Positions 42,801-48,800 are shown, counted from the first letter of the stretch. The stretch is DNA of 64,000 bases from Tubulanus polymorphus (GCF_964204645.1 NC_134035.1:11936451-12000450), one strand, 5' to 3'. Program-made: numbers and translations. Notes: generated by a model not told the origin, from the sequence alone.

Positions 42801-45800
42801 GCCTCGAGCCATTTATCGTCCTGGTTACCGGTTCTCGACCAGGCCGTCATTATGTACGCGTTGGCCGAGGATTTCACGCGCAGATTCAACGCGTTGATGT
42901 GAGTTCCGTACATGTGATACCAGAAATTCACGCAGTATTTGCCGGCCGGTTTCGTAGCGCTTTGTAAACGGGCGGCCTTGTTCGGAACTTGAGGCAGCGA
43001 CGTTTCGATGTACATGTACCAACCCATATCTGAATAAAAATCATAAGACACATGTTCCTTATTCACTTACAAAGACAAAATTTCATACTGAGTGGCCACT
43101 TTTATCTGACTCGCTTTTTCCCTGACTATTTCTTGGCATGCACATTACTTTATCTGACTTAATCTGCTAAGAATCTGATCAATTAACACAGTCAAATACG
43201 TAAGACATAGACAGAAAATGTTTGAATTTACACACGATCTAGCAATATCAACATATTTCTCTGCCTTTTCTCTGATTTATAGCTTTTTTCACAAAAATCC
43301 CTGACTTTTATCTAAGATAAGAAAATTCCCTGACTTTTATCTAAGATAAGAAAATTCCCTGACTTTTCATCGATTTCCCTGCCACGTAAGAAGCCACATT
43401 GTCATAGTTCCTTTTTTTCAAAAAGAACTTACTTGTGCCTAATGTGTGATCAACGGTAGGACCGGTACCGAGAGTATCAGACGCGCCGCGATATCGAGTC
43501 CATTTGAAATCTGTATCAGGACTGTCTTCGTACGAACAAATTCCGCTCTCAAAATCACAGTCGTAATTACTTTTAGCTGTAAACGATAAAATTGTTGACA
43601 TTTTAACTCAAAAGCGCTGAAGATTTACCTTGTTCAAGGTTGAGTTAAAACATAAATCGCGATGTACAGTAATGTATGTGATCATGCATATGGTTCATTC
43701 AGTCAATATTGTAAGCGTACTTACTGGCTACAGTAGTCGAAAGTATGGTTGGGATCACAGATGTAGGAATTGCTGTTGGACCTGTTGTCATTGGGGGAGT
43801 CGCGCTGGCTGGCTGTACTGTAAAATAGAATAAATCGGCATAAGCATCTAAACTTGGCTACAAGTCACCAGACCAGGGCTGCCAACCTCTGAAAAGTGCT
43901 ACCAGTGACAAGAAGAATTTTTTCCCGACGATTTCTTTGAAATGTGGAAGATGTTAAAATGAATCAGTAGTCAATGGTTACCCATCTTTCACATTTCAGT
44001 ATAAGTTCAATCAGTATTTCTTGGGAGAAAATACTAATAAAATACTGCTGAAAATCTGGATGAGTTGTTAGCTCTGCCAGAACTACTATACTAGTTTGTA
44101 GAATGTACCAAATCATTTAGACCAAAACGCTAAAAGATTGGATCAATAATTCTTGATAAGCTTCCTACTAATATTACCTACCCTTAAACTTAATCACTGA
44201 AAAACTTACCGACACAATTTCCGGTACCGAACGAGACATCATCAACTGCAATATCGCTTTTATCACTACCTCCGTGTACACCTTGTATTACCAGTTCATA
44301 AAGACTATCACTGACAAACCCAACTTGAGCAGGTCTCCATCTATCACCGTAATCACCATTTAGTTGCCAAAGATTAGTGTAAACTTCTTTCTGCATCAGA
44401 AGGAATGAATTCTTTCAGTAAGCGTTTTCTTATCTCCAATGACATTCAGGTACCAGTATAAAGACTTTCAAATGATTACTTAATATATTCTGAATATTTT
44501 TACTTCAACATGGTAGAGATTTAGGTTTTAAAAGGTCATAAACCTAAAACCTTATTTCCTACCATCATCAATTTATGAATATTCTTTACTTCTATATGGT
44601 AGAAATGATTTATGCGTTTCCATCAAGTATGTGAGATGGCTAGCAAGGAATATCACGTCTTCGCTTCATTGAAAAGAAATATAAAGCATATCAAACCTGT
44701 TTGAGTAAGATCTGAAGGGTGCCGACATTTACGCCGTATTTGTGATACCAAAACTTCAAACAACGACCCTTAGCCGGCGTAGGATCGAAGATTTCAGATA
44801 CTAATCGCGCTCGATCACCTTTCTTCTGAGGTTGAGACGATTCCGTGAAGATATATGTTCCTGAAATAGATATACATATTCAAAGTAATTGTCAGAAGAA
44901 TTGGATCCTATGAACCTTAGTGTCGTAACAAACCTTCAGAGGTTCCTAATGTATGATCGACTGAGGGTCCGGTGTGCCACGTTGGTGTACTTCCCTTTCC
45001 CAACTGCCAATCAAAGTCTGCGAGTGCGTGATTCCAACCGCAAATTCCGTTCTCGAAATCGCAGTCACCTGTAACAGCAACAAATCAGTATAAACAGTTA
45101 CAAGTCACATCAGTATCGGTTTATTGGATGAATTCAGTTACAAAATACAACATGGTCTATGGGACAAATCCATTTAGAAAAAATTTGTATTTCTGTATAT
45201 GTGAAGCAGCTATTACTATTTCTCAGCAATAGTCAAACTGTGACAATGAATTCTTGGTTTCTATTTCATAAGAAGGCATCGTCACAGCTGAACTACTGCA
45301 AAGCAAAATTTTGCAGGAGCAAGGATTCAAGGTTATCCCTCGATGTGATACGCAAAAGCAATATTTCAGGTGTCACGATGAATTCTTCAATCTATATGAA
45401 ACAAGAAGGCATCGTCACAGCTGAATTACGGCAAAGCAAGTTTTTGAAGAAGCTAGCAATGATTAAACCACGTCTGTGAATGGATACACCCCAGCAATAT
45501 TTCAGATGTAACGATGAATTCTTCAATCTATATGTAAAAAGAAGGCATCGTCACAGCTGAACTACGGCAAAGCAAGTTTTTGAAGAAGCTAGCGATCTAT
45601 GATTAAACCACGTCTGTGAATGGATACACCCCAGCAATATTTCAGATGTAACGATGACTTCTTTGTCTTAACGCAACAAGAAGGCATCGTCACAGCTGAA
45701 TTACGGCAAAGTTATGAATATGTGGAATAAAAGCAGCACGAAAATATTTTTTAAATTCAGATTGTGAGAAGCTAATGCAATAACAAAACTGCGACAATGA

Positions 45801-48800
45801 ATTCTTGGATGAAATTTTATAAGAAGGCATTGTCACAGCTGAGCTATGGTAAAGCATTGTTACAGCGAGCAATATGTAGGGTAGGTCCTCGAAATGTTGA
45901 TGAAATTATGTGATAAGCGATTAGCTGTAGATCAGCTTTGACGACGAAATCTTGCTTTTTATGATACAAGAAGGCATCGTCACAGCTGAAGTATCGCTAA
46001 GCATTTGACGAGGACAAAGCATCTTACAACGAGCTATATGAAAGATCGTTAGAATTCAGCATACATTTTTTCTGCGTGAAGCTACAGCAAAAGTTTAGCT
46101 CTGAAGATGGATTCTTGGTTTTTATGCATAACAAGAAGGCATCGTCACAGCTGAACTGTGGCAAAGCAAGCATCAAATACGGAACTAGCTGAAACATGTT
46201 CAAAAATACAAGTCCCCAGTATTTTGCGCGATATAAGCTCAGGCAATAGTTTAGATGTGACAATGCATTCTAGGCAAATACTTCATTAGAAGGCATCATC
46301 ACAGCTGAACTATGGCAGAGCAAGCTGAATAACAGTAGAGCAAGCTGAACAGAAATACAATCTGAAATACAAGCTAGAGAATCTACATATTAATCATCAT
46401 ATGCCATAAGAGGGCTGATGAGCAAAGAAGTCTTTTCGCAAAGCTCATGATCTTTGTATAATAGGCTAAAGCAATAGTAAAGCTTTGACGGTGAATTCTT
46501 GATGTCTGGATCTAACAAGAAGGCATCGTCACAGCTGAACTATGGCGAAGCAAGCATCTGAAAAATCCGAAAGCAAGTACTTTGCGAAAGCGCGCTATGT
46601 TACCCCGATCTCTGCGAAGAGGCCTTAGTAATAGGACAGCGGTGACTATGACTTCTTAGTTCGTATTTCATAGGAAGGCATCGTCACAGCTGAACTACGG
46701 CAAAGCAAGCGTTTTAAGTCAAGCACAAGTCGATAACTACGCAGCACCAAGAGGTTCCAGATATCGATAAGCCCTAGCAATATTTCAGATGTGAAAATGT
46801 ATTCTTCGTCTATATATATATATATAACAAGAAGGCATCGTCACAGCTGAATTACGGCAAAGCAAGCGTTTTGAGTCAAGCACAAGTCAATAACTACGCA
46901 GCACCAAGAGGTTCCAGATATCGATAAGCCCTAGCAATATTTCAGATGTGAAAATGTATTCTTCGTCTATATATATATATATATAACAAGAAGGCATCGT
47001 CACAGCTGAATTACGGCAAAGCAAATAATACTGTCGGCTAAATATAAGCATTTTCTCATCAGGTGAAATACTTACCTAGAACACCGCAAGAACCGTCACT
47101 GACCGCGATATCATCTATAGCGATATCACCCATATAATGCGCTCCGACGATTCCTTCGAATGCCACCTGAAATTCATGAGATGATATTACACACGTATCG
47201 GATAGAAGCTGAAGAGTTTGAAGACATAAAGCGAAAACTGACGTGTAAATTCTGATTAGAGGGTAGATCAACTTCGGCGAAGTTCCATTTATTTCCTTGG
47301 TCAGTGCTGCGGCTCCATAACGCCGGACCAAGATTCGATATCTGTCCGATTTCTTGCTTCGCGTAGTAAACATTCAACGATCCGATGTGTTGTCCGTACA
47401 TGTGATAGTAAAACTGAAGACACCGACTCTGAATATCTGTCTTGATTTTCGGCGTCCACAATATCGCTCGTTGTCCAGATAGTTGAGGCCTTGAGGTCTC
47501 GATGTACACATAATAACCTACAAATCGTACGATAGACACGATTAGCAAAATAATTCCAATAATTCTCCATCTCTTAGATTTGAAAAATACGCGAAGAACA
47601 GAAGGATCTATAAGAGTCTATATAATGAATGTCATGCATTATATGCATAAACTTTGTAACAATAATTTATTCATATTTGCACCATGATAATCATCAAATA
47701 AATCAAATCAAATCAAAGTTACAATTAAGAAATAGTTTTCATTTAGAAGTTTCAAATTTAGAAATGATGTAATTTAAATTGACCTTTCGCCATAAGTATG
47801 TACAATATCAACAAAATCAATTACGAGTACAGTGCATGTTAAGTACATAAACAGAATGGTAGTCTGCCATCAATTTCATTATTCTAAATATTGTGTCTTT
47901 AGAGATTGGATTAAGATCTATTAGAAATATGCGCGTAAATGAAATACAAATAATAACACATACTAATACAGCATATACAAAGGACAGAAGCTATAATTGC
48001 TGTTATATACGTGTATTAATATAACGCTGTTTCCTAAGGATGTTCAGACACCCTGAAAATTGGCGTGCCATGAAAATGGATGTTATACTTGCCGTATGAT
48101 GTTCCGTAAGTATGATCGACTGACGGACCGGTTTGATCTGAATCCGTTTTACCGTTGATTCGACTCCATTTGAAATCGGCGTTTAGTTCGTGCTCCATTC
48201 CGCACAGACCGTTTTCGAAATCGCACGACGTGAAATTCTTCTCGACGACGGGCCCCGAACACGAGCCTAATTTTAACGCGATATCGTCGACGGCGATGTC
48301 TCCTTGGTACCAAGCTCCTACCGTACCTTCGATTACAACCTACAATATTCAATCACTTGAAATAACTGTATCGTTGAATTAAGAACATTTAAGTTACACG
48401 ACTAAAAAAAACTTTACTGCAAATATCAAAGAAAGTGGTTCTTTTCAAGTGGTTTTTAAGGGCTACATTGACTATGATTTGAGTAAAGCCCCAAGTTTTA
48501 GTTAAAACTAGCCCGAGATGTGTGAACTGGCATAAATAGAAGTTATACTACACATCCAATAAATCCGGGGTTAATTGCAGTCATGGGTTAGATTAAAGAC
48601 CGGACTAAGGCTATCTTAGTTCTATAGCCAATCTAGCAACGAAGACTGGCCTTAAGATTTGAGACCACTTTTCGACTTTAGGAGTCACAACTGTACCGCT
48701 GGCCCCCAGGCGCTGGAGCTTCCCTGCTTATTAAGACATCGCAAGCAATAGTTTACTTTGTTAATAAGTTACGCATTTTCTGTATTTGTGATGACAGGTT

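Follow-up and report, generated by a model that had tools for sequence, protein, structure and literature searches.

Why should one 22-nucleotide (nt) sequence recur twelve times within a single intron, each time accompanied by a diverged inverted partner? This question is raised by a 64,000-nt stretch of the Tubulanus polymorphus genome (GCF_964204645.1 NC_134035.1:11936451-12000450, hereafter the window), in which the twelve copies lie on the minus strand inside a gene with MAM and LDLa domain signatures. We propose that they represent twelve paralogous genes of the spiralian microRNA family Mir-1989, arranged as a polycistron that would have grown by repeated tandem duplication within the intron and would be transcribed together with its host. 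Based on sequence comparison, we give this reading a probability of about 0.8. The repeat itself, the folding of its units, the asymmetric conservation of their arms, the family resemblance, the position in the intron and the uniqueness in the genome are directly established.

A motif search of the window with the 22-mer TCAGCTGTGACGATGCCTTCTT returned 12 minus-strand matches at up to two mismatches, compared to none expected by chance. The 22-mer is perfect in nine of the copies, and the remaining three carry one, one and two changes, respectively. All twelve positions listed in a preliminary description of this DNA were thereby recovered, with 0-2 mismatches on the minus strand (the start of each 5p arm in Table 1). 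At 45642, a thirteenth match lies on the plus strand and corresponds to the partner arm of one hairpin described below. The distance from unit to unit is 133-165 nt, apart from a single gap of 230 nt between hairpins 4 and 5, in which a model search of the window with default filters found no decayed thirteenth copy. Tandem Repeats Finder (TRF) detected just two short sub-arrays, with periods of 136 and 157, and most units are alike in the hairpin alone. Inside the 230-nt gap, immediately before hairpin 5 when read along the minus strand, a separate 20-nt unit is repeated 2.5 times at 46303-46351 (TRF score 63). In part it is a copy of the 5' basal flank of that hairpin, and it may be debris of unequal crossing-over.

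Each of the 12 units folds into a single hairpin, with a minimum free energy of -26 to -36 kcal/mol and z-scores of -2.6 to -6.4 against shuffled sequences. With the conserved 22-mer set as the 5' arm and 2-nt overhangs allowed for, ten copies yield a predicted precursor of 60-62 nt, and the remaining two, whose loops are TA microsatellites, yield 68 and 70 nt; both the folding and the uniform length of ten precursors had been anticipated in the preliminary description. In each copy 16-20 of the 22 arm positions are paired and the loop spans 16-26 nt, and the array hairpins have the at least 16 paired duplex positions and the loop of at least 8 nt that characterize a MirGeneDB-type hairpin. 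Among the Microprocessor motifs, 11 of 12 copies have a UG dinucleotide 14 nt before the arm, and 7 of 12 have UGU where the arm meets the loop. The TA-microsatellite loops belong to hairpins 1 and 2, the two youngest copies. An extra TA at 46810 appears in three DNA runs, so that the loop length is polymorphic and the arms are not.

We aligned the 12 units with 16-nt flanks and counted the deviations per cell against the column consensus. No deviating cell was found in the seed (0/84), and the whole 5' arm has four (4/264), compared to 52/264 in the 3' arm and 60/216 in the loop. The flanks deviate in 27/192 (5') and 64/224 (3') cells. The difference between the 5p and 3p arms is highly significant (Fisher p = 2e-10) among the ten copies that are left after removing one member of each recent duplicate pair. 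Arm positions 1-10 are without any variation in all twelve copies. Over the 30-pair structure, standard pairs fill 83.9% of cells, compared to 34-49% once the partners are slid by 1-3 columns. The earlier proposal that positions 1-10 are invariant, that star arms, loops and spacers drift around a retained arm, and that the structure is nevertheless maintained is thus borne out by the alignment. This order of conservation, in which the mature arm exceeds the star arm and the star arm exceeds the loop on a preserved structure, corresponds to the evolutionary signature used in MirGeneDB-type annotation. Three pairs have changed on both sides; in two of them a rare substitution within the 5' arm is matched opposite, namely G to A at arm position 12 with C to U in copy 8, and U to A at position 22 with A to U in copy 5. 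This covariation lends modest support to a maintained structure, short of proof.

Most spacers share about 50% identity, no more than the baseline of a global alignment, and the spacers are mostly unrelated, as the preliminary description had put it. The exceptions are two pairs, the spacers 1-2 versus 2-3 (96% identical) and 9-10 versus 10-11 (91%), which are the products of two recent duplications. The older copies have an average similarity of 62% outside the 5' arm, compared to 96% for their arms. The end branches of the copy tree range from 0.06 to 0.67 changes per site with a median of 0.22; at that rate, neutrally evolving arms should have accumulated several dozen changes, and four are seen. 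Gene conversion does not account for the conservation of the arm, because it would also homogenize the partner arm only 16-26 nt away. Moreover, copies 1-2 group with copies 9-11 from the opposite end of the array with a support of 91/94; therefore, the array did not grow by simple stepwise duplication of neighbours. That all twelve arms are intact while the rest drifts argues for selection on each copy.

The conserved arm points to miR-1989, a family specific to spiralians or lophotrochozoans (PMC6468455; PMC3840308), which has been studied in ovary development of Schistosoma (PMC11688426), oyster haemocytes (PMC4650145) and snail estivation (PMC6387573). In the snail, the miR-1989-5p forward primer carries TCAGCTGTCATGATG at its end (PMC6387573, supplementary file 1). 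A second study reported a 22-nt small-RNA read, ucagcugucaugaugccuuccu, which shares a 15-nt prefix with this sequence, as a novel candidate located on a scaffold of a reference genome (PMC3972184). Of the 22 positions of this read, 19 are identical in the arm of the array, positions 1-8 with the seed at 2-8 among them. Compared to the published miR-1989-5p, the majority copy has G instead of C at position 9, C instead of U at position 11 and U instead of C at position 21; at positions 11 and 21 the canonical base is retained in one copy each (Table 1). The sequence UCAGCUGU is present in 12 of 12 copies, and both the published primer and the 22-nt read start with the same eight bases. The seed CAGCUGU (guide positions 2-8) is identical to that of the family in every copy. 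In addition, a guide that starts with U and lies on the 5' arm of a hairpin of ~60 nt agrees with the published name, miR-1989-5p. The preliminary description had proposed this name, and the published sequences back it. As a side remark, the palindrome CAGCUG is an E-box/PvuII site, and any 6-mer target site contains the seed itself.

The resemblance extends beyond the guide. A 20-nt arm pattern with 18 specified bases, used to scan public metagenome contigs, matched 26 loci, of which only L018 and L024 form a hairpin that has the matched sequence for its 5' arm. These two unannotated metagenome contigs are rich in AT, do not look bacterial and carry one copy each, and we take them as miR-1989 loci from sequence and fold only. 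A covariance model (R1), built from the 12 units of the array only, recognized L018 (46.5 bits) and L024 (31.5 bits) and gave no score to any of 59 chance matches, comprising the 24 other metagenome loci and 35 bacterial ones. The latter served as negative controls and came from a pattern scan of prokaryote genomes, which returned bacterial chance matches only. Further alignment revealed that the partner-arm core GAAGUCAU is common to L018, L024 and copies 3 and 9 of the array, and that most other copies read GAAUUCAU. Through these two loci, homology with hairpins from other animals covers the whole precursor including the partner arm. The single hairpins lie at L018:1211-1304 (+) and L024:1383-1469 (-), with A and C at arm position 9, respectively, and G in the array; position 9 appears to be a freely varying site of the miR-1989 guide. 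Judged by seed, arm similarity, arm side, precursor homology, hairpin geometry and conservation pattern, the units of the array are probably Mir-1989 family genes.

Searches of the 268-Mb genome place the array at a single locus. At up to three mismatches, the array motif was found in the array, in addition to two weak matches on contig C2. The latter were considered as further copies and rejected as chance matches, as neither of them folds (z about -0.7). No genomic match beyond the array was found for the canonical mollusc miR-1989 22-mer at up to three mismatches. The covariance model recovered nothing beyond the 12 copies and their antisense shadows among the best 150 of ~131,000 first-look candidates, which were those scored. 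A single locus by pattern searches and by the covariance-model search of the 150 best candidates means that the unit is neither a dispersed miniature inverted-repeat transposable element (MITE) nor a satellite, one of the outcomes by which the preliminary description could have been overturned.

The array is not an assembly artefact. An independent DNA run that looks whole-genome (X1) covers the array stretch at even depth without joints, and one of its contigs, 1,022 nt long, spans five complete hairpins with ~1% differences and therefore derives from a different haplotype or individual. The arms account for 29% of the array, yet all 16 variants listed within it fall outside both the 5' and the 3' arms; if the variants were spread uniformly, the chance of this would be ~0.4%, a value that is indicative only. 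Two further runs, X2 and X3, are represented at the locus by patchy DNA. Within 44100-48300, short loose ends, GATGGACGAACC and GGTTCGTCCATC, recur at the contig ends of both, and look like library adapter or linker rather than genomic sequence.

The intron that harbours the array is bounded by splice sites in phase 1 and lies between two exons of MAM-domain coding sequence (Table 1). The upstream exon ends at position 157 of the 158-position MAM profile and the downstream exon begins at position 1 of the next MAM domain; therefore, the intron sits exactly between two MAM modules. The array lies on the sense strand and fills about 90% of the intron, beginning 66 nt past the donor and stopping 163 nt short of the acceptor. 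Along the full 64 kb of the window, the minus strand shows repeated MAM start and end signatures, in addition to LDLa signatures near 2110, 2875 and 15075. The proposal that a giant MAM gene hosts the array in one intron accordingly holds at the level of domains, with the host exons searched one by one. The L018 and L024 contigs (1.4 and 3.0 kb) carry no MAM exon, tblastn giving noise only, and are too short to decide on intron conservation.

Table 1. Host-gene features and predicted microRNA hairpins at the locus (window coordinates; bit scores are those of the model)
Feature	Position	Strand	5p arm	Length	Description	Basis
Upstream host exon	47076..47166	-			MAM domain end; 5' limit approximate	Pfam PF00629 positions 126-157 of 158
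Host intron	45069..47075	-		2,007 nt	Phase 1; donor GTAAGT at 47075, acceptor ACAG at 45069	Splice sites read from sequence
Whole array	45213..47025	-		1,813 nt	12 hairpin units including basal stems	Motif, alignment, covariance model
Hairpin 1	46940..47009	-	46988-47009	70 nt	Predicted precursor microRNA (pre-miRNA); TA-repeat loop	94.0 bits
Hairpin 2	46783..46850	-	46829-46850	68 nt	TA-repeat loop; recent duplicate of hairpin 1	95.3 bits
Hairpin 3	46634..46693	-	46672-46693	60 nt	Position 21 is C as in mollusc miR-1989	83.9 bits
Hairpin 4	46477..46538	-	46517-46538	62 nt		89.4 bits
Hairpin 5	46249..46308	-	46287-46308	60 nt	Position 11 is U as in mollusc miR-1989	91.8 bits
Hairpin 6	46093..46154	-	46133-46154	62 nt		88.7 bits
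Hairpin 7	45930..45989	-	45968-45989	60 nt	Most diverged copy outside the arm	78.7 bits
Hairpin 8	45783..45842	-	45821-45842	60 nt	Arm position 12 G to A	86.5 bits
Hairpin 9	45640..45699	-	45678-45699	60 nt	Sole copy without UG at -14	92.5 bits
Hairpin 10	45500..45560	-	45539-45560	61 nt		98.1 bits
Hairpin 11	45364..45424	-	45403-45424	61 nt		91.3 bits
Hairpin 12	45232..45291	-	45270-45291	60 nt	Most stable, -36 kcal/mol	99.7 bits
Downstream host exon	44934..45068	-			Start of next MAM domain; 3' limit approximate	Pfam PF00629 positions 1-43 of 158

Two other features of the host gene region lie outside this intron. At 47625-47765 the depth of run X1 rises from ~40 to ~610, and numerous contigs stop at 47673-47717, where they are followed by unrelated sequence; this segment is a high-copy dispersed repeat in the next intron of the host gene. 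At 55744-55807 on the plus strand, antisense to the host gene, the tRNA family Rfam RF00005 matches marginally, scoring 30.5 bits where the gathering threshold is 29.

Several observations weigh against the array being a set of host-transcribed Mir-1989 genes. No listed run with the locus is recorded as RNA, and a further run that is possibly RNA (X4) covers neither the intron nor its flanking exons. An Rfam 15 scan of the array gave no mir-1989 match and no match above threshold, with unrelated microRNA hairpins matching weakly (for example mir-605 at 36 bits against a cut-off of 98), and the scan of the whole window similarly yielded no mir-1989 family match, with weak generic microRNA-hairpin matches. 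The downstream CNNC motif is absent or at a non-standard distance in most of the 12 copies. The mean folding energy of the minus strand is -28.2 kcal/mol versus -27.4 for the plus strand (p = 0.72), so the minus strand is not favoured by folding, and its assignment is based on homology to a 5p guide with U as its first base, together with the UG at -14 and the orientation of the host. The covariation is modest, as three compensatory pairs were also reached by 54 of 500 shuffles, and the structure string behind the pairing counts was taken from one of the aligned copies. The absence of variants from the arms refers to the 16 listed in the array, with 17 more in the covered stretch outside that listing, and the genome search with the covariance model to the best 150 of its ~131,000 first-look candidates.

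Alternatively, the hairpins might be real Mir-1989 precursors driven by their own promoter in or upstream of the intron, or be efficiently processed in a subset only, so that no twelve-fold dose coupled to the host would arise. The efficiency of processing may vary by copy, given the missing UG at -14 in copy 9, the long TA-repeat loops of copies 1-2 and the inconsistent CNNC. Nevertheless, with the array on the sense strand and leaving 66 nt to the donor and 163 nt to the acceptor, a separate promoter has little room, and the preservation of 12 of 12 arms amid drift argues that every copy is under selection; we regard this alternative as unlikely, though the most plausible of the three considered.

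Considerably less probable is that the units form a locus-specific hairpin satellite or a MITE-like fold-back tandem repeat that is never processed, its likeness to miR-1989 being a coincidence or the relic of a single gene. Both strands do fold equally well. Such a repeat, however, has no copies elsewhere in 268 Mb, and if neutral it would not hold one arm at 97% while the opposite arm stands at 69% and the spacers at baseline. Gene conversion would homogenize both arms, compensatory changes are present, the seed and arm match a known microRNA, and the precursor model finds homologues in other animals. Least credible of all is a role at the DNA level, in which twelve CAGCTG E-boxes ~150 bp apart, one per unit and formed by the palindromic seed positions 2-7, would constitute an intronic enhancer for basic helix-loop-helix factors and the hairpins would be incidental. 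An E-box accounts for six conserved bases but not for 22, and it leaves unexplained the complementary arm, the compensatory changes, the size of 60-62 nt and the UG at -14.

The interpretation as a host-transcribed Mir-1989 polycistron provides a scheme for the output of the locus. We propose that the host pre-mRNA, transcribed from the minus strand, would serve as the primary transcript, from which the Microprocessor (Drosha/Pasha) would crop twelve stems of ~35 bp about one helical turn above the basal junction that is marked by the UG at -14. Dicer would then cut off the loop of 16-26 nt, and the 5' arm UCAGCUGUGACGAUGCCUUCUU, carrying the seed CAGCUGU, would enter Argonaute. Each transcription event would yield more of one guide RNA, and the output would be tied to transcription of the host gene. 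As all copies possess the same seed and a near-identical guide, the dose would be multiplied and the targets would not be diversified. We infer the processing, the choice of arm, the co-transcription and the effect on dosage from established animal microRNA biogenesis. In a check for self-targeting, no 8-mer seed site was found on the host strand elsewhere in the window.

Large tandem clusters of same-family microRNAs are well known, including zebrafish mir-430, the cluster in intron 10 of mouse Sfmbt2 and primate C19MC. The eutherian MIR-154 cluster has 33 family members in human (PMC11701709). Similar to these clusters, the present array consists of same-family hairpins arranged head to tail, predicted to lie on one primary transcript, in which the mature arm is kept and the rest has diverged; like the Sfmbt2 cluster, it is located inside an intron of a host gene. 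Compared to them, the array is much smaller, belongs to an ancient family that spans phyla rather than to a lineage-specific one, and maintains an identical seed without diversification. Other intronic microRNAs are co-transcribed with a host gene and cropped before splicing is completed. The array shares with them the sense orientation in a spliceosomal GT...AG intron, and differs in that its hairpins take up 90% of the intron. Tandem clusters of same-family microRNAs, including intronic ones, are well known and the mechanism is not new, but to find so many copies of this particular ancient family may be unusual. The hairpins of L018 and L024 are single on their short contigs, compared to twelve tandem copies here. 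The literature searched makes no mention of miR-1989 paralogues or of a miR-1989 cluster, the curated copy numbers of MirGeneDB lying outside that search, and the main text of the MirGeneDB 3.0 paper does not mention the family.

In a separate observation on the same chromosome, 2.8 Mb from the array, five tandem copies of the miR-29 seed region, TAGCACCA(N)TGAT, lie at 307-1434 on the minus strand of locus L045 (G000:C11:9106500-9112000), where 0.26 would be expected by chance, and two of them have sub-threshold Rfam mir-29 and mir-83 matches. A second conserved microRNA family seems to be tandem-amplified in the Tubulanus polymorphus genome.

Conserved microRNA families usually keep a low and stable copy number, and for this reason serve as phylogenetic markers. 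A tentative extension of the proposed Mir-1989 polycistron, which we consider possible but doubtful, is that an ancient spiralian microRNA, normally present as a single copy, has been amplified for dosage in this lineage and the amplification long kept, perhaps as part of a genome-wide habit of tandem amplification at which the five miR-29-seed copies hint. Long retention is suggested because the older copies are saturated outside the arm while all twelve arms are intact. If this extension is correct, the locus would offer a natural model for the evolution of microRNA dose versus target repertoire, with the dose hard-wired to a giant extracellular MAM/LDLa gene. If the units are host-transcribed Mir-1989 genes, miR-1989-5p would be very abundant in Tubulanus polymorphus, at a level that follows the host MAM/LDLa gene. 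The array adds a probable miR-1989 locus to the annotation of this genome, and its twelve-fold amplification, with guide arms kept and the rest drifted to saturation, presents a clean natural case of selection on a 22-nt product, which suggests selection for dose.

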